The position numbers were made by a program, and so were the translations under genes. A stretch of 64,000 nt of DNA from Guillardia theta CCMP2712 (taxonomy: Eukaryota; Protista; Cryptophyta): positions 62,001 through 126,000 of the forward strand of contig NW_005434639.1 in assembly GCF_000315625.1 (NCBI RefSeq), read 5' to 3'. The notes under the pieces were generated by a model. That model worked only from the letters and a program-made list of their open reading frames with translations, made no database searches and was not told the origin of the DNA. Positions 11,627 to 44,540 of the stretch are shown in pieces (position 1 is the first letter of the stretch; the number at the start of each line of letters is the position of its first letter).

Positions 11627-12169
11627 CTTAATGAACGCTGTCAACAAGAGGAAAGTCAGAGCAAGACAGAAAATCGGATATCTTATGAATTTCAATCCGA
11701 TCTCGGAAATCGAGTTTAGCCTGCGTGCTTTTCTCTTGTATGCTAAGATTCATGAAGTGGTGAAAAGAAACCAGAACAACAATGACATTAGAATCATCAA
11801 CCACCAATGTTCGCACAACTTTCATTCCATGTCAGCATAACCATGACCTCCTTTATATCGTTCATACGTTACACATTCAGTTATCAATGATCCGGTCCAC
11901 CCGTGACCCCTGCAAAGCGGCTTGCCGCCGGGTACCGTACCGGGCCCCCCGGGCCCGGGCGGGCCGGGCCCAGGCGGCCCTGAGTCTGATCAGTCACGGC
12001 GCCGCAACTTGACGCTACAGTGCGGTCCGGCCGGGCGAGCCACGAGGCTCAGGCCTCTTCATCCCGTTGAGAAAAAGGATGATGATGATGATGATGATGA
12101 CTCTCAGGATCATCATGCGGCCACCGGAAAAAGAGTCACTGAGTGGAGGAGGATGACCGTCTCAAGAGG

Positions 12170-12575
12170 ATGAGAATGAGGATGACTCAGTGAGGAGGAA
12201 GATGACTCAGTAGGAAAGGAGGAGGAGGAGGAGGAGGAGGAGGAGGAGGAGGAGGAGGAGGAGGAGGAGGACTCAGTGAGGAGGAGGAGGAGGAGGAGGA
12301 GGAGGAGGAGGAGGACTCAGTTAGGACGAGGAGAACTCAGTGAGGAGGGGGAGGAGGAGGAGGAGGACTCAGTGAGGAGGAGGAGGAGGAGGAGGAGGAG
12401 GAGGAGGACTCAGTGAGGAGGAGGTGGAGGAGGAGGAGGAGGGGAGGACTCTGTTAGGATGAGGAGAACTCAGTGAGGGGGGGGAAGAGGAGGAGGAGGA
12501 CTCAGTGAGGAGGAGGAGGAGGAGGAGGAGGAGGAGGAGGACTCAGTTAGGAGGAGGAGGAGGACTCAGTGATCT
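12170..12575. repeat. Compound satellite: (GAG)n runs punctuated by about 12 GACTCAGT-like motifs, with a ~130-bp higher-order duplication
   Basis: Directly visible. The block gactc.gttagga.gaggagaactcagtgag occurs at ~12315 and ~12447. Confidence 0.9.
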
Positions 12576-13008
12576 TGAGGACGAGGATCAGGATGAATGG
12601 ATGATCATCGGATGATGAGCGGCCGCAATGACTTCACCGCAGCAATGCCCGGTATGATTGGGCTAAGGAAAAGATGCCGAGAACAAGTGAGGAGGGGAAC
12701 GCGAGTACAACGACTCGGCTCTACATACATTACGTGACGCTCACCTCGCCAAGACCCTTCGGCTGCCTCCTCCTCCTGCTCCTCCTCTCTCGCATGCGAC
12801 ATCGTCCCCATCCGCCCCTCCTCCCTGCCCCTCCTGGACACGTACCCGCTGTCGTGCTGGTCTCGTCTCCCTCCCCCTCCCCCTCCCTGCCCTCGCCTTC
12901 ACATCAAGCCCTCGCAAGTGCAAGTACAGACAGCATTCGCTTCATTCCTATCGTACACACGCTCTATCTTACATAAGGCCCTCCGCCCTCCCCTCGCTAT
13001 CCTCCTAT

Positions 13009-13320
13009 CTACATCTTGTCCAGGCGTGCTCCGCTGCTCTTGTCGCTCCCCTGGGCTTGCCGCAGACTGGCGGCCGCTTTCGTCCTTGCTGCCAGGATGC
13101 TGTCTAGCGCCATGCCCTTGCCCGCTCTGTCCCCGCACGGTCTCGTCGCGACGTCGGGTGCGAGAGGGGACCTCGGCAGCCTGGCGGGCTTGCAGCTGGT
13201 GTACCAGACCTCCTGCTGGGGCAGAGAGATGAGCGGGGAGGGGCGCTGTCTGTCAGCAGGGGCGGGAGGCTTGCGGCAGGCTGGCTGATGGCAGAGGATG
13301 AAGGCGGCAGGCTGGCACAT
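13009..13320 (-). CDS. Small intronless protein, family copy A (103 aa, MCQPAAFILCHQ…GMALDSILAARTKAAASL…)
   Basis: The ORF is conserved in three near-identical copies and has TATAAA at 13364-13359. A diverged fourth paralog conserves this reading frame. Confidence 0.65.
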   Translation of the reverse strand: MCQPAAFILCHQPACRKPPAPADRQRPSPLISLPQQEVWYTSCKPARLPRSPLAPDVATRPCGDRAGKGMALDSILAARTKAAASLRQAQGSDKSSGARLDKM

Positions 13321-13358
13321 GTGCTGGTTGGTGAGGGGGAAGGGAGGGAGGGGAGCTG

Positions 13359-13364
13359 TTTATA
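13359..13364 (-). promoter_or_regulatory. TATA box of copy A
   Basis: TATAAA lies ~44 nt upstream of the ATG and is conserved in copies A, B and C. Confidence 0.55.
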
Positions 13365-13869
13365 GAGGGGAAGTCGAAGGCGGAGGTGTTTTACTACTAC
13401 GTATCCGAGGAGAAGGGAAAGGGAGTGTTTTCGAAAGCATATCCGCCGGTCATGGTTCAATGGCACACCGGCTGCTCCCGTGCCGGAGGCCCACGTTCAC
13501 CGTCACGGCGCCGCCGCCGCGTGAGGTGACTCAGTCATCGGGCCTCACTTCACTGAAGACAACCTGAGTGTCACGGTGCCGGGTTACTGTGACGGTCAGC
13601 CCCGCCCGGTCCGCCGCCGACGGGACCGTGGACCGTACGGACTCGCTAGCCGCTGAGCCTTTCTTTCATCTGGTGTTGTACCGTACGATAATCCGAGGCT
13701 GTGCTACGGTACTCATTTTGACTCGGAGTACTGGCGGCAGCGACGGCTAGGCTACTAGGCTACGAGTTCCATTGTCGGTCCTGGAGTCCCGGCGGGGGGC
13801 CGCGCGACGGCCGGGCCCGGCGCCCAAACCCGGTTGAACCGGCAGTCCGAGGCCAGGCTTCAAAGACTC

Positions 13870-13875
13870 TATAAA
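13870..13875 (+). promoter_or_regulatory. TATA box of copy B
   Basis: TATAAA lies 47 nt upstream of ATG 13917. Confidence 0.55.
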
Positions 13876-13916
13876 GACCTCCCCTCCCCTCCCCTTCCCC
13901 CCTCACCAACCAGCAC

Positions 13917-14228
13917 ATGTGCCAGCCTGCCGCCTTCATCCTCTGCCATCAGCCAGCCTGCCGCAAGCCTCCCGCCCCTGCTGACAGACAGCGCCCCTCC
14001 CCGCTCATCTCCCTGCCCCAGCAGGAGGTCTGGTACACCAGCTGCAAGCCCGCCAGGCAGCCGAGGTCCCCTCTCGCACCCGACGTCGCGACGAGACCGT
14101 GCGGGGACAGAGCGGGCAAGGGCATGGCGCTAGACAGCATCCTGGCAGCAAGGACGAAAGCGGCCGCCAGTCTGCGGCAGGCCCAGGGGAGCGACAAGAG
14201 CAGCGGAGCACGCCTGGACAAGATGTAG
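13917..14228 (+). CDS. Small intronless protein, family copy B (103 aa)
   Basis: Near-identical inverted copy of A (L->Q difference in ARLPR/ARQPR). Confidence 0.65.
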   Translation: MCQPAAFILCHQPACRKPPAPADRQRPSPLISLPQQEVWYTSCKPARQPRSPLAPDVATRPCGDRAGKGMALDSILAARTKAAASLRQAQGSDKSSGARLDKM

Positions 14229-14719
14229 ATAGGAGGATAGCGAGGGGAGGGCGGAGGGCCTTATGTAAGATAGAGCGTGTGTACGATAGGAATGAAGCGA
14301 ATGCTGTCTGTACTTGCACTTGCGAGGGCGTGATGTGAAGGCGAGGGCAGGGAGGGGGAGGGGGAGGGAGACGAGACCAGCACGACAGCGGGTACGTGTC
14401 CAGGAGGGGCAGGGAGGAGGGGCGGATGGGGACGATGTCGCATGCGAGAGAGGAGGGGGAGGAGGGAGCGGGAGGGTCAAGACGCTGGTGAGAGGACATA
14501 AGCGAGACAGCTGGACAGTTGCAGGACATGTTTTCCACGCTCACCCGGCATGACGCAACGTCATCAAGGGAAGAGAAAGATACAGGGCAAGCAGCGATCG
14601 ATTGTTGTGCTCATTCAATCATACATCTATACATCGTCAATAGACTTTTGTACATGTCGGTTGATGCCGGCCTTCTCACATTCATTGTACACCCTGGGTT
14701 GCTGTTTGTTCCCTTGTAT

Positions 14720-15025
14720 CTACAACTCCTTTGCTTGGCATCGAGCGTTTGCGAGTAGACTAGCCTGGACTTTCTTCCTTGCAGCCAGGATGCTCCCTAG
14801 TATCATTCCACTCCTGCACTGACCGTCGAGGCTCTTGGCCGGCTCAATAGGCATCTGACACCTCATCGATGCAGGCTTTTCACTTTCGTGCCAAGTCACT
14901 TTTTCAGGGAGAGACACCCACGTCGCTCGCCTCGCAGGTAAAGAAACGCTTTCTTCAAAGGCCCTCTTAACTCCCGCTGAGCTCTGCATGTCAGGAACTG
15001 TGCATACATCCTGGGATTTCCACAT
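14720..15025 (-). CDS. Small intronless protein, diverged family member D (101 aa, MWKSQDVC…)
   Basis: WVSLPEKVTWHESEKPA matches LISLPQQEVWYTSCKPA, and GMILGSILAARKKVQASL matches GMALDSILAARTKAAASL. Length is similar. Confidence 0.6.
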   Translation of the reverse strand: MWKSQDVCTVPDMQSSAGVKRAFEESVSLPARRATWVSLPEKVTWHESEKPASMRCQMPIEPAKSLDGQCRSGMILGSILAARKKVQASLLANARCQAKEL

Positions 15026-15750
15026 CGCGTTGGAGTATCCGCTTGTCACGGGTCGAGTGGAAAAAGGAGCTCGAGGAGAAGAGATGAGGAGTAAGGAGAA
15101 CAAATGGAGAGGTTTCTGCAAGGAAGGAGGAAGGGGCGGGGGCAGGTGCGGGGGTGGAATGGTCTGCCACCACAGTGAGAACGAGAAGGATGCTTGAAAG
15201 GTCGGGGGAGAAGGAGGAAGAGGAGTACTACCGACGAGAAGCGAGGGAGGGCAAGGTTTGTACAGGGCTCGATGTCCGAAGAAGGTGAAGAAGAAAAAAA
15301 ACTTAAAGGTAGAGCAGAAGGGTGGGGTAGTATTTGGTTGAAAAGGGGGTCCTGATCCTGCCAAGAAACGGAGTGGGGTGGGGTCTACATTGAAGAAGGC
15401 AGAAGCCTAGAAAGGGTGGGTGTGGAGAGGACTTTTAGATGGTGGGGTGGAGAGTTTAACTGCAGGGATATTTGACCGCCGGGGTGGTGTCCGAGTCCGA
15501 CTCAAGCGGGCCCGGGGGTCCGTCACTGACGTTTTAAAGCCACACACGTGAGCAGGATCCGGTATGGCTGAGGTGATTTGTACTGATAACTTTTAGTCAA
15601 GCCGCGTCCTTTAACTGCAGCGACCAGTCTACCTTCTCAGTCACGCTTCTGCCATGCCCCTCCCGGATAAGCTTTCGAAAACACTCCCTTTCCCTTCTCC
15701 TCGGATACGCAAAACACCTCCTTTCCTTCTGACGCCTTCGACCTCCCCTC

Positions 15751-15756
15751 TATAAA
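15751..15756 (+). promoter_or_regulatory. TATA box of copy C
   Basis: TATAAA lies 48 nt upstream of ATG 15799. Confidence 0.55.
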
Positions 15757-15798
15757 GACCTCCCCTCCCCTCCCCTTCCCCCCCTCACCAACCAGCAC

Positions 15799-16122
15799 AT
15801 GTGCCAGCCTGCCGCCTTCATCCTCTGCCATCAGCCAGCCTGCCGCAAGCCTCCCGCCCCTGCTGACAGACAGCGCCCCTCCCCGCTCATCTCTCTGCCC
15901 CAGCAGGAGGTCTGGTACACCAGCAGCAAGCCCGCCAGGCTGCCGAGGTCCCCTCTCGCACCCGATGTCGCGACGAGACCGTGCGGGGACAGAGCGGGCA
16001 AGGGCATGGCGCTAGACAGCATCCTGGCAGCAAGGACGAAAGCGGCCGCCAGTCTGCGGCAGGCCCAGGGGAGCGACAAGAGCAGCGGAGCACGCCTGGA
16101 CAAGATGCAGATAGGAGGATAG
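15799..16122 (+). CDS. Small intronless protein, family copy C (107 aa; stop TAG changed to CAG extends the C-terminus by QIGG)
   Basis: Near-identical to A and B; aagatgCag versus aagatgTag. Confidence 0.65.
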   Translation: MCQPAAFILCHQPACRKPPAPADRQRPSPLISLPQQEVWYTSSKPARLPRSPLAPDVATRPCGDRAGKGMALDSILAARTKAAASLRQAQGSDKSSGARLDKMQIGG

Positions 16123-16605
16123 CGAGGGGAGGGCGGAGGGCCTTATGTAAGATAGAGCGTGTGTACGATATGAATGAAGCGAATGCTGTCTGTACTTGCA
16201 CTTGCGAGGGCGTGATGTGAAGGCGAGGGCAGGGAGGGGGAGGGGGAGGGAGACGAGACCAGCACGACAGCGGGTACGTGTCCAGGAGGGGCAGGGAGGA
16301 GGGGCGGATGGGGACGATGTCGCATGCGAGAGAGGAGGGGGAGGAGGGAGCGGGAGGGTCAAGACGCTGGTGAGAGGACATAAGCGAGACAGCTGGACAG
16401 TTGCAGGTTAAGTGCAGGTATGTTGTCGGAACTACTCGGTGAGCAGAGCTTGACGTTACTCCCACATATGGTGGGTTTGATCTACCTGTATCCCCATCCT
16501 CCCCGTTCTCGCATCTTTTCCTTCAGCTCCATCATCGCAGATGCTCGTCATCGTCGCCATCATCGCTGGTTGCACTGCCAGGCCAGCTTGCCGTGTCACT
16601 TGCGA

Positions 16606-18402
16606 TCATAAGTTCAGTTGTCTGTGCAGCCGCCGAGCAATCTCCTCGTCTCTGCTGCAAGCAACATCGCGTTCGCTCCTGCCCTGGTCATCAGGAACCC
16701 ACAGCTGCTCCTCCCTGCCTCCATCCCACCTGGCCAACCTTTCCGCGAAGACAGTAGAGGAGGATTGCCTGTACAGATATTTGTGACGCGAAGACATCAG
16801 GAGCTTAGAAACCTTGATGATGCAGAGTGCGAGGTTAACTTTCGATTGAGGGATCCGAGCTGCTGCTGAGTCAGTTTATCTCTTCCCTTCCCCTACCTCT
16901 TTCCCCCTTTTGCCATTCTCCAACTAAAATCTTTCTGAATTCTTTTCTCCTTCCGAAGTTTCTCCTCTCCATCCTTCACTTGAGACATCGAAGTGTTCCC
17001 TGGCATCTCCGTCCCCAGTCCCTGCCTTGCCTATACTTCCCTCCTCTTCCCTCCCCTCCGACATCCTTCACCTTGAGAGCTCGGCAAATTTCATTGCACG
17101 TATGCGTCTCAATGAACCTGCAGGGAGACTCAGAAACCTGGTTGCATTTCAAACTCTTCTCCCCATTCCCCCCTCCTCTTATCGCACTCGCTGCTCGCAG
17201 CCACCAAACTCTAACTCCCTCCTTCTCACTTGTTGATCCCCTTCATGCCGCAGTTTCCTAGCCCATATCCTTTGCCATCTTTCGAATGGATCTCTTCGAC
17301 ATGTCAGATGATTCGTCTCTCCATCTCTCTTCTCACGAGGGTCAGTGAAGTAGTTCCCCACCCCCTGGATGTCGCATATGAGCAGCTCCCTCCTGCAAAA
17401 GCACGTGTCAACAAGACCAGGTGAAGAGAACAATCAGACAAAGAGGATAAGATTCGGATGCTGCAGCAGGGGCTGGAGCTAGAGGATGAGAACTCAAGGA
17501 CAAGAATGACAGACAGGTACAGATGAGAACAACAAGGACGAGGACGAGGACAAGGACGAGGACAAGGACGAGGACAAGGACGAGGACGCACCCAGAAGAT
17601 TCGAACGTAAAGTGGCTGAAAGCCTGCGGAGCTTTGAGGCTCGTCGTAACACTTCCATAGTTGTCGTTGTGTTTCACGTACTCCCCGCACATCACCTGAG
17701 CGTACAGTGACCGAAAGGACTCCCTCCATGGGAACTGGCTCAGACGACAAACACCAGGTGACCTACAGGTTCAGCCGTGCAAACCCTCCCATTCGAGAGC
17801 TCCAGCACGTAAGAAGGAACGAAGGCGATCTTCTCTCTGATGTTTGCAAGCTTGTTGAAGTCGTCAGCGTAACTCTGAGCGATCATGTTGAGCTTCGCGT
17901 CCTCATAGTACACCTCCTTGGCCTCCTTCGTCTTGTAAAACTTGGCGACCCATGGGCTCCTCGTTCCGTCCGCATCAATCTCCCACATTCTGTGCTGCAT
18001 CGCAATGCCATGATGAGCGGAGATCTTTGATCACATGCGGATCTCATGGAGATTTTTCACAAAATGGAAAACGATTACACGATGAAGGTCGACGAGACTA
18101 AGGGAACCAAGACGCAGCGCTGACGTTCAGATCGCAATAGTAACAAGGATGAAACTATGGTCAAGGAGGCATCGAGAACAGGGTGACAGGCTCAAAGATA
18201 AGAGGGCATAACAACTTTTCATCGGAGGGTGGGGAGCAAGTCGATGAGTAGAAGAAGGGTGAAGGAGGATGAACTTGTTTACCGCTCGTCTCATCCCTCC
18301 TTCCTCGAAACTCTCGTCTTCTATCTTCACTTCGACTTCACTCATCGTCCATTTCCCGCTCATCGACATCCAGCATCCTTTTCGCCCTCGGCACCTCGCC
18401 AT
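16606..18402 (-). CDS. Alpha-kinase (eEF2K/MHCK-type atypical Ser/Thr kinase), multi-exon
   Basis: Spliced motifs include FEEGGMRRA|HRM, WVAKFY, QSYADDFNK, AEP|VMCGEYVKHNDNYG, PQAFSHFTFESS, LLICDIQGVGNYFTDPQIHS, GYGLGNCGMKGI and FIETHTCNEICRAL. The C-terminus is DEEIARRLHRQLNL*. Confidence 0.92.
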
Positions 18403-40850: not shown

Positions 40851-42586
40851 TATGTCCAGCAGAAGAGAGTGAGACTTCAAAATGACATATGTTGCGTCGT
40901 TGATGAGATCGACTCTGGCGATCTCCTTGATAATGATACCAATGATGATGACGATGCATCTGTCTCTCCCTTTGCAACGATGATTTTGATCGCGGCGGTG
41001 GCGCTTAGAAGGGAGGGGGGAAAGGGAAATTTGTGCTATGAACCGCTGGAGTGATTGGGGTCGGGGGCTCCTCTTGAGCTGAAGGCTTCTTCAGGTCAGG
41101 CTCGATCCTTTCTTCGAGGCCTACGACAGGCTGCGTCATCGCGCCATCACTCGCCCTCAGTTCTTGCGAGCGCTGAGCGCGGCGGTGAAGAACCAGGTGT
41201 ACATCTCGCCGCAGGAGGAGGAGGCTATCTTTGCTTCCTTCTCCCGCCCTGATCAGATGGTCAACTATCGCAACTTCTGCGATCACTGCATGCAAGTACA
41301 GGTGCTCCCTGCTGTTGCCTCCTCCTCCTTCCCCTCCGCTCCGCTCACATCCCTTGCTCGTCCTTGTTAGAGAGATCTCGAGAAACAGCCCTTGATTCAG
41401 CTGGCTGAGGACGAGGCCCCGTCGCGTATCCGCCATAATGAGCTGACGGACAAGGTAGCTTCATCCTAGTCCTTATCTCCTTCCTCCTTCTCCCTCCTCC
41501 TTCCTCCTCTTCCTTCCTCTCTCCTCCTCACTCCTTGGCTATCCTCCTCCTTCCTCCTCCTCCTCCTCCTCTTCCTCCCATGTTCTCGTCGACCTGTTCT
41601 GCATGACTGGCTGAAAGGACGAGATTTATTTCCACAACACTCTGCTCCCAAAACTTCAGCACATCGCACGTGAGCAAGGTGAGACATAGAGCGCAAGGAG
41701 GAGGAGACGGCAAGCTAAGCAGAGGATGCAGGACTAGTTGTCAAGAACAACTTCCTCGATNNNNNNNNNNNNNNNNNNNNNNNNNNNNNNNNNNNNNNNN
41801 NNNNNNNNNNNNNNNNNNNNNNNNNNNNNNNNNNNNNNNNNNNNNNNNNNNNNNNNNNNNTACGTACGTGTACCCCGACCCCCACCCCCGCCCCCCTCCC
41901 CCCTCCCTCCCTCCCTCCTCCTCCTCCTCCTCTACTTTCCTCTTCTCCTTGACTTTCTCCTTCCTCGTCCTTGATCGAATGGATGGTTATGCTCCTTGCT
42001 CCCTATCGTCTCGCTCCTCGATCTTGAATCCTTTCCTCCTTTATCTCACGATCTTTCCGGCATCTCATCCTCCTACCATGTTACCTGCTGCCTGCTTCCT
42101 CCACTAATTTTATGAGTGCAGGCGAGTGACGAAAGGCCAATTCCTCCGAGGATTGCCAGACAAATTTCAGGTGATAGAGGAGAGGAGAGGAGAGGAGAGG
42201 AGAGGAGAGGAGAGGAGAGGATTGGGGAGAGGAGAAGATACGAGAGGAGAGGAGAGGATACGAGGATAGAGGGGAGGTCAAGGAGTGTCAAGCTGATTTT
42301 CTATCGGCAGGTCGCGTGCTCCAAGAGCGACGTCGAGATCCTCGTGCAGAAGTACGGCGTGAAAGGTGATGACGGAGGGGGAGGAGGGAAGGGGAGGAGG
42401 GAAGGGAATGACAAGATTGTCCCCAGACATGTTTGGGACAACAGTCGATGTCGACTATCACTCGCTCCATTTGGATATCTCAGGTGTCCTGCTCCTGTCC
42501 TATTCGTCGCATGCACCTCCTCCGCTCTTCTTCATCCCTTTCTCCCTATCCTCCTCCTCCTTCCTCTCCTGCTCCTGCTCGTTCCT

Positions 42587-42626
<40 letters not shown>

Positions 42627-44540
42627 CGCCTTTAGACAAGGCAGTAGGCTGACTTCAATTCAGGGTCTGACCCTGCGCTGAGCCTGCCGGATGGGTTGAC
42701 TCAAAGCACCATCGAGCAAAGGCAGAGCCACATGGACGCGATTCCCAGGATCCCCGTCCTATCCCAGCTCGAGCGAAGAGTGCGACAGGTCTCCTCCTCC
42801 TCCTCCTCCTCCTCCTCCTCCTCTTCATCGTCGTCTTCCTCCTCCTCCTCCTCCTCCTCCTCCTCCTCCTCTTCCTCCCCCTCTTCATCGTCGTCTTCCT
42901 TGTCGTCTTCCTTGTCGTCTTCCTCCTTGCTGTCCTCCTCCTCGTCCTTCGCCTCCTTGCTGTGCTTCCCCTCCTCCTTCTCCTCCTCTNNNNNNNNNNN
43001 NNNNNNNNNNNNNNNNNNNNNNNNNNNNNNNNNNNNNNNNNNNNNNNNNNNNNNNNNNNNNNNNNNNNNNNNNNNNNNNNNNNNNNNNNNNNNNNNNNNN
43101 NNNNNNNNNNNNNNNNNNNNNNNNNNNNNNNNNNNNNNNNNNNNNNNNNNNNNNNNNNNNNNNNNNNNNNNNNNNNNNNNNNNNNNNNNNNNNNNNNNNN
43201 NNNNNNNNNNNNNNNNNNNNNNNNNNNNNNNNNNNNNNNNNNNNNNNNNNNNNNNNNNNNNNNNNNNNNNNNNNNNNNNNNNNNNNNNNNNNNNNNNNNN
43301 NNNNNNNNNNNNNNNNNNNNNNNNNNNNNNNNNNNNNNNNNNNNNNNNNNNNNNNNNNNNNNNNNNNNNNNNNNNNNNNNNNNNNNNNNNNNNNNNNNNN
43401 NNNNNNNNNNNNNNNNNNNNNNNNNNNNNNNNNNNNNNNNNNNNNNNNNNNNNNNNNNNNNNNNNNNNNNNNNNNNNNNNNNNNNNNNNNNNNNNNNNNN
43501 NNNNNNNNNNNNNNNNNNNNNNNNNNNNNNNNNNNNNNNNNNNNNNNNNNNNNNNNNNNNNNNNNNNNNNNNNNNNNNNNNNNNNNNNNNNNNNNNNNNN
43601 NNNNNNNNNNNNNNNNNNNNNNNNNNNNNNNNNNNNNNNNNNNNNNNNNNNNNNNNNNNNNNNNNNNNNNNNNCCCTCCTCCCTCCTCCCTCCTCCTCCT
43701 TCCTCCTTCCTCATGCCTTCCTCCTCGTCTTTCTCTTTCATCCTCATCCTCATCGTCCTTCCTCTTTTCTCTTCCCTCCTCTCTCCTCCGCATCCTGCCC
43801 CATCTTCTTACCCTTCACTGCAGGCAGCAAGGCTTGCTAAACTACCTCGCTTTCGTCCGCGAGGTTCCTTTCCTCCCTCTTTCTCTTTCCTCCTGAACCT
43901 CCAACAAGGTTCGAGGAAGCCTCCGCAGGAACAGGAGAGTTATCGTGGAAGAAGTTTACAGGTTGGAGGAGGAGGAGGAGGAGGGTGCGTGTTTCCTTAT
44001 GCTGTCTGCAGCTTCTGCTTCCTCAACACAGGATTGATCGACATGCAAAGACTGTTCGAGGATTTTGATGCGGTAATCCTCACTCCCCTTGCACGTCCTC
44101 TCCTTCCCTTCCTTCCTCCTCCTGTCCATCTGTCCGCCTTCTCCCTCCTCGTCCCTTCCACCTTCCCTCTTCCTCCCTCCTCTCTTCCTCCCTCCTCCTC
44201 CCTTCCTCCTTCCCTCCTCCTCCCTTCCTCCTTCCTCCTCCCTTCCTCCTTCCCTCTTCCTCCCTTCCTCCCTCCTCCAACCTCCCTCCTTCCTCCACTT
44301 CTCGTCATCTTACTCGGAGGGCCGCAGAACTTTCACCCTCGCAGCATGGACGGCTCCTTGTCTTACCAAGACTGCCTCCGAGACCTCGAGGACGTCGGTT
44401 GCCCTTGTCTTGCCTCCGCTCCCTTACACCCCAGCAGGGCGTCAGCTTGAGACGAGCTGGTCGAGCTCCGACCGCTGAAGACCTGCTGGACTACTGGGCT
44501 ATGATCTCATTTAACCTCTCAGATGAGCAGGTGGATTTAT
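40851..44540 (+). CDS. EF-hand-repeat protein (EFCAB6-like, possibly flagellar), multi-exon and interrupted by two gaps
   Basis: EF-like segments include FFEAYDRLRHRAITRPQFLRAL, AIFASFSRPDQMVNYRNFC, VEILVQKYG…DVDYHSL and MQRLFEDFD…MDGSLSYQD. Boundaries are uncertain. Confidence 0.55.
41761..41860. other. Assembly gap (100 N)
   Basis: Run of N. Confidence 1.
42178..42260. repeat. (AGAGG)n pentanucleotide repeat, intronic
   Basis: Visible directly. Confidence 0.85.
42990..43673. other. Assembly gap (684 N)
   Basis: Run of N. Confidence 1.

Follow-up and report, generated by a model that had tools for sequence, protein, structure and literature searches.

Intronless small genes of Guillardia theta form a lineage-restricted family whose basic products, predicted to be mostly disordered, probably act through short motifs

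What are four short, closely spaced open reading frames (ORFs) doing in the intron-dense genome of a cryptophyte, and do they encode proteins at all? The frames, here called A, B, D and C, lie in a 64,000-nucleotide (nt) stretch of the Guillardia theta CCMP2712 genome (contig NW_005434639.1, positions 62,001 to 126,000; "the window", to which coordinates without a contig name refer). This stretch is contig C35:62001-126000 in the 87.1-Mb, 669-contig assembly that was searched in this work. An initial annotation, made from the letters only, had proposed that A-D are intronless paralogs of about 100 amino acids (aa), arranged as two divergent pairs and belonging to an uncharacterised small-protein family. 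We find that A-D are genuine, transcribed genes of a much larger family, and we favor the view that its products are mostly disordered basic proteins that probably act on a partner via short docking motifs. The four genes and the transcript of D are as follows.

13009-13320, minus strand: gene A, intronless 103-aa ORF (coordinates include the stop codon); ORF list, colinear 276-nt RNA contig at 13058-13333 and minus-strand RNA sequencing (RNA-seq) reads.
13917-14228, plus strand: gene B, intronless 103-aa ORF; ORF list and plus-strand raw RNA-seq reads spanning the 13824 to 14375 bins without joints.
14720-15025, minus strand: gene D, 101-aa ORF, diverged paralog with both motifs; coding sequence (CDS) 15025-14723, stop codon 14722-14720.
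15799-16122, plus strand: gene C, 107-aa ORF; ORF list and colinear 270-nt RNA contig at 15792-16061.
14600-15225, minus strand: transcript of D, 627-nt colinear RNA contig with a poly(A) site at 14600.

These ORF positions bear out the proposed arrangement of two divergent pairs, A(-)/B(+) and D(-)/C(+). In the run available as raw RNA-seq reads, read strand follows gene orientation throughout (A minus, B plus, D minus, C plus), and three more runs supplied RNA contigs that align colinearly with the genes. Sense-strand transcripts were thereby found for all four. No splice joints were seen in A, B, C or D among the RNA-derived contigs and reads. The adjacent gene differs in this respect:

16412-17293, minus strand: neighboring spliced gene with four GT..AG introns of 44-212 nt (16678-16728, 16768-16811, 16860-17071 and 17116-17227), evident in each of three sets of RNA contigs.

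Because these introns are removed in the very same runs, the contig sets are RNA and the genome is intron-dense, against which the colinearity of A-D stands out as had been claimed. A poly-T loose end on reads just before 14600 corresponds to the poly(A) tail of the minus-strand D mRNA. The 5' untranslated region (UTR) of D extends over at least 200 nt and, with no CAT on the plus strand between 15026 and 15225, holds no upstream ATG, so that MWKSQD... begins at the first AUG. A-D are genuine, intronless nuclear genes of G. theta, transcribed in sense.

Three of the genes are embedded in longer repeats:

12763-13351, minus strand: 589-nt repeat unit of A, comprising a short leader, the CDS and about 250 nt downstream.
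13886-14474, plus strand: 589-nt repeat unit of B, from repeat comparison.
15768-16356, plus strand: 589-nt repeat unit of C, from repeat comparison.

The units are 97-98% identical overall, and A and B show just 4 differences across their inner ~540 nt. The encoded proteins are near-identical copies, as first noted (~99% identity); gene C has CAG where A and B have a TAG stop, which adds four residues. Since the flanks of A, B and C are no less conserved than the CDS, and many overlapping ORFs run in other frames, one could read the region as non-coding repeats or transposon fragments in G+C-rich DNA, with accidental ORFs. The diverged paralogs argue otherwise. A six-frame genome search with protein A recovered D (E 1.3e-3) and two paralogs on contig C39, E and F (E 8.5e-7 and 4e-3). 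Protein D shares only 32-40% identity with A, the value varying with the alignment used, and aligning the two confirms that it retains the motifs SLP..W..S.KPA and GM.L.SILAAR.K..ASL. By the Nei-Gojobori method, silent sites between A and D, E or F are saturated (proportion of synonymous differences, pS, 0.64-0.81), the nonsynonymous distance (dN) is 0.48-0.81, and the ratio of dN to the synonymous distance (dS), omega, is ~0.3 where estimable; the predicted protein-level constraint on D is borne out to this extent. The stretches W-[VI]-S-L-P-E-K-E-x-W and G-M-x-L-x-S-I-L-A-A-R-x-K are kept in this one frame only, and their conservation across saturated silent sites fixes the reading frame, as had been anticipated. 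In addition, the transcripts are sense-strand and polyadenylated, and the copies are clustered locally instead of being scattered through the genome as identical insertions, with no terminal repeats or transposase nearby. The reading as non-coding or transposon-derived sequence is largely refuted, and we give it almost no credence.

The family extends well beyond the window. Genome-wide profile searches combined with open-frame reading gave no fewer than 27 loci with E < 1e-4, falling into four subfamilies, and members left out of the query profile scored 2e-6 to 1e-19. The total is at least 30 loci on ~10 contigs, so that the proposed small-protein family is not merely four local genes. The loci and subfamilies are distributed as follows.

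Loci by contig: C35 (4), C39 (2), C29 (2), C3:991-1001k (~10), C3:46.7k, C163, C298 (2), C77 (3), C97 (at least 5), C358 and C33.
Subfamily 1, on C35 and C39: RRAxWVSLPEKEVWY ... GMALxSILAARxK.
Subfamily 2, at C3:991-1001k (~10 copies) and on C29: M-R/C-x-VTVLWSEVSLSAAP ... SCLENILAARRK.
Subfamily 3, on C97 and C358: MCSISPVSWSRVSLSS ... SCLDNILAARVK.
Subfamily 4, on C163, C298, C77 and at C3:46.7k: PRSTIKIAHVSAWS ... LLLGSVMAARSK.

The divergent gene on C33 falls outside all four subfamilies. All members encode basic proteins of 78-160 aa (isoelectric point, pI, 9.1-11.5), most of them rich in Pro, Ser, Ala and Gly. Two conserved islands appear from the alignments: a Trp stretch, which reads W-[VI]-S-L-P-E-K-E-x-W in the subfamily of A-D, and a predicted C-terminal amphipathic helix, G-M-x-L-x-S-I-L-A-A-R-x-K. 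Among the at least 30 loci, the C33 member (G000:C33:130019-130252, equivalent to L052:1501-1734, minus strand) is the only one annotated. It is identical to GUITHDRAFT_108229, a 78-aa "hypothetical protein" of G. theta CCMP2712, and is A+T-richer and Lys-rich.

Several copies show features of their own. The subfamily-2 copies at G000:C3:991500-1001200 (~10) form a dense 10-kb cluster of mixed orientation, in which the copy at C3:991584 has apparently lost its stop and continues beyond the customary end into an open frame of 360 codons. A subfamily-4 copy at G000:C298:2597-2752 (L008:453-725, minus strand) is broken by an assembly gap (a run of N), which makes the copy counts lower bounds.

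How far does the family reach outside G. theta? In line with the initial annotation, which recognized no known domain, a Pfam scan of 11 members (among them A, D and representatives of each subfamily) and of the long upstream-open ORF of D gave nothing above threshold, and a profile search of the PDB returned no relatives. A sub-threshold match of the C33 protein to DNMT1-RFD (PF12047)/Rb_C (20.1 bits, E 7e-4, below the 22-bit gathering cut-off) had no counterpart in the ten other members; because a PDB search with the C33 protein returned no DNMT1 match, it is treated as chance. A full hidden Markov model (HMM) scan of 1.8 billion representatives yielded only protein P0001 and P0002, an 826-aa bacterial repeat protein whose score is inflated by "ANWTSGPNKNVWFKF" repeats and which we reject as a relative. 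Word-index profile searches returned P0001, P0003 and P0005, all from the single metagenome project PRJEB17505, plus one annotated G. theta protein. A-F were not found in a 5.8-billion-protein collection and are hence not in public annotations. A scan of JGI metagenomes produced 193 pattern matches, none of which (0/193) was confirmed by tblastn, and the one match in an IMG/VR scan, to contig L061, proved to be a low-complexity Pro/Arg/Ser-rich stretch with stop codons, so that there is no sign of viral origin. ESM Atlas feature searches with E and one member of a cluster on contig C1 (described below) gave no usable match, the best value of 0.81 falling within the range of shuffled proteins. 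Literature searches turned up no publication that deals with the family or with GUITHDRAFT_108229. At profile sensitivity, the family appears restricted to the Guillardia lineage, that is, to G. theta and the three PRJEB17505 proteins.

The metagenome relative also dates the copies in the window. Protein P0001 is 88% identical to A, and its contig matches A, B and C at ~95% DNA identity throughout, TATA box and UTRs included, which identifies its source as a very close relative. Synonymous distances among A, B and C (dS 0.027) are smaller than those to P0001 (dS 0.056-0.090), which indicates that the three genes were duplicated or gene-converted after the split from that relative; A, B and C are thus young or gene-converted copies. 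Comparison of A, B or C with P0001 gives omega values of 0.63-0.87, based on few changes. The 12 amino-acid changes that separate A from P0001 all fall outside the motif cores (0/12 inside). Taken with the deeper comparisons, this pattern shows that constraint is concentrated in the motifs while the remainder evolves fast.

A more distant branch probably exists. A degenerate pattern search, followed by reading of the ORFs, located a cluster of small genes at C1:859-873k with the motifs LSWQHVLFP ... ISLP..F.LE ... EGMLLRSL. BLASTP of D against a C1 member gave E 0.002, and hhalign of the family alignment against the C1 alignment gave E 1.9e-4 at 48% probability, with both motifs aligned in order; a profile from the merged alignment detects ~15 loci on C1. 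We consider it probable, though not proven, that the C1 cluster is a distant branch of the family, which would then probably number at least 45 loci.

What might such proteins do? The AlphaFold2 model of A, computed from a 13-row family alignment, has a mean predicted local distance difference test (pLDDT) score of 62, a predicted template modeling (pTM) score of 0.24 and a single helix at residues 71-91. The model of D, computed from the merged alignment, has a mean pLDDT of 66 and a single helix at residues 74-96, and its confidence peaks over the two motifs only (pLDDT 76-81 over residues 31-50, 72-80 over residues 71-90). The "SILAAR" helix is the sole helix predicted in either model, consistent with the earlier suggestion of one helix in an otherwise disordered protein. 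We think it reasonably likely, and likelier than any alternative considered here, that this is a lineage-restricted family of expressed, mostly disordered basic proteins acting via short docking motifs on a partner. Its products would then be ligands that bind through short motifs. Docking onto a folded partner in the cell would fall to the C-terminal amphipathic helix, in which hydrophobic L-x-x-I-L is followed by A-A and next by R-x-K; a second contact would come from the Trp/SLP stretch. Amplification of the copies may raise dosage or diversify the linker.

Several points weigh against this proposal. Evidence for the gene products reaches the RNA level. The docking mechanism is drawn solely from the conservation pattern. 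Both AlphaFold models are of low confidence, which makes "disordered" a prediction. The omega values of A, B and C against P0001, estimated on few changes, mean that most of the sequence is nearly unconstrained, and kinship with the C1 cluster is just probable at the hhalign probability given above.

Short docking motifs in a disordered protein also recall regulators of protein phosphatase 1 (PP1), which bind the phosphatase via RVxF and SILK motifs; proteins that are small, basic and disordered, as the products here are predicted to be, are typical partners of PP1. We scanned 19 members with regular expressions for RVxF ([RK]-x(0,1)-[VI]-{P}-[FW] or [KRL][KRSTAMVHNQ][VI]{FIMYDP}[FW]) and SILK ([GS]-I-L-[KR]). 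At the Trp motif, D has KVTW, the C33 protein has RTIRF (a textbook RVxF) and C3b has LTIRW, but these are the only three members of 19 with RVxF at this position; A, B, C, E, F and most others match neither definition. C97b carries REVTW in its long C-terminal tail, outside the Trp motif. "SILAAR" is superficially like SILK, yet the SILK expression matched 0/19 members, the conserved core being [SN]-I-L-A-A-R instead. The order of the motifs is moreover opposite to that of inhibitor-2, in which SILK precedes RVxF. By these motifs the family does not belong to the PP1 regulators, and we regard direct PP1 regulation as improbable, though a PP1-like docking logic is possible.

Other short-motif resemblances were rejected after comparison by eye with the aligned members. 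The defining positions of the WH2 domain, GoLoco, ESCRT MIM1, B56 LxxIxE and 14-3-3 mode II sites are not conserved across members, nor are those of a Kemptide-like RRAS site (E only; RRAT in D) or of the histone H3 ARTK/AARK tail conserved family-wide.

The N-termini suggest another possibility, namely that the products are oxygen- or nitric oxide (NO)-labile regulators with a Met-Cys N-degron, in which Met is removed, Cys2 is oxidized by a PCO/ADO-type dioxygenase and the protein is degraded. The sequences of A, B, C, P0001, E, the C29 copy and every C97 and C358 copy begin with Met-Cys, so that three of four subfamilies share this start although their N-termini are otherwise little alike. 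Exon-wise matches to PCO_ADO above the Pfam cut-off (40 and 36 bits) were found at C25:595165-595694. Cys2 is missing, however, from D, F, the C3 copies and the C163 and C77 copies, and it is equally explicable as an acylation site or by simple inheritance. An arginyl-transferase was not found in the genome (no ATE_C match, and for ATE_N just 18 bits, E 0.2, at C12:416115-416270), although exon splitting may hide domains. Support for a Cys2 N-degron is weak, and we attach only a small chance to this possibility. Its boldest extension, to which we give a slightly smaller chance still, would make all 30 to 45 or more loci of the superfamily a set of conditionally unstable ligands, most with an exposed Cys2, degraded by PCO/ADO under oxygen or NO, whose SILAAR helix titrates one conserved hub only in hypoxia or darkness. 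If true, an oxygen-sensing module would have been independently invented in a cryptophyte.

The initial annotation had likened these intronless, amplified genes, with their TATA boxes and bidirectional promoters, to a regulon induced rapidly by stress or light, a proposal that can be set against the following upstream features.

13359-13364, minus strand: TATAAA of A, 44 nt before the ATG; also kept in metagenome contig L027.
13870-13875, plus strand: TATAAA of B, 47 nt before the ATG.
15751-15756, plus strand: TATAAA of C, 48 nt before the ATG.
13400-13445 (A side) and 15664-15709 (C side): 46-nt upstream element, an inverted repeat with 98% complementarity; also at ~95-140 of L027.

The TATAAA reported ~45 nt before the ATG of A, B and C was located 44-48 nt upstream in all three, and its retention in the metagenome ortholog, like the amplification of the genes and their lack of introns, is compatible with inducible expression. 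So is the 46-nt element shared by A, C and L027. It consists of two CGGATA repeats flanking TTTCGAAA and matches at 98% between A and C; in L027 the element is largely kept but its TTTCGAAA palindrome is not, and the element is absent upstream of B. Beyond these genes the pattern breaks down. TATAAA was not found within 200 nt of the ATG in D, nor within 200 nt upstream of the ATG in 14 other family members checked, so the description "TATA-containing" holds for A, B and C and fails for D and the other members checked. Only genes of the young A/B/C type, together with their metagenome ortholog, carry the box. A k-mer search for cis-elements in 16 family upstream regions found only C/T-rich tracts in common, barely above shuffled controls. 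Word depth in three RNA-derived contig sets, from reference-type runs only, is of about the same order as that of the neighboring gene. Bidirectional promoters are not supported either: the spacers within the divergent pairs measure 596 and 773 nt, and A, B and C each have their own TATA box and core promoter, with no single common bidirectional core. An inducible regulon with TATA-driven divergent promoters is in our estimate unlikely, though less so than the PP1 and N-degron alternatives.

Two further observations concern the composition of the window. A GAGGAG-rich minisatellite at 12166-12600, made of 32/41-nt units ending in GACTCAGT, adjoins copy A. At 42001-44000 the G+C content falls sharply to 0.37, compared with 0.50-0.63 in the rest of the window.

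These findings bear on how the genome is read. The public G. theta annotation omits nearly the whole of an expressed family, and gene counts and "orphan" statistics for this reference cryptophyte genome are consequently too low. The locus offers a clean case for the birth and amplification of intronless small genes in an intron-dense genome, and with so simple a two-motif grammar the cellular partner can be sought directly by pull-down. As it stands, this is one more uncharacterised lineage-specific family.

The family resembles the disordered regulators of PP1 (inhibitor-2, inhibitor-3 and NIPP1-type) in being small, basic and disordered by prediction and in combining a helix with a hydrophobic or Trp-containing docking stretch and a further short motif. 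It departs from them in the rarity of canonical RVxF (3/19), the lack of SILK (0/19) and the different motif order, and neither Pfam nor PDB shows it to be similar in sequence to any family of PP1 regulators. Its likeness to the Cys2 N-degron substrates (plant ERF-VII, animal RGS4/5) lies in the Met-Cys with which most subfamilies start and in the PCO/ADO-like gene that the genome contains, whereas Cys2 is not universal in the family, arginyl-transferase was not detected in the genome, and there is no sequence relation. The C1 cluster has the same module as the family, [WFY]-I-S-L-P, a short linker and G-M-L-L-x-S-L-x-x-A-x-K, and its genes are likewise intronless, clustered and Guillardia-restricted, but in the C1 proteins there is an additional acidic half at the N-terminus, the linker has ~12 residues in place of 25-35 and the AAR core is missing. 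There is also a likeness to taxonomically restricted (orphan), locally amplified families of small disordered proteins, which share with this family the absence of detectable homologs beyond one lineage, short, basic and disordered products, tandem or inverted local clusters, near-identical young copies and fast evolution outside short motifs. Unlike those, the family described here is unusually large (at least 30 loci), nearly unannotated and intronless in an intron-dense genome, and it has a defined two-motif grammar that is maintained across subfamilies.

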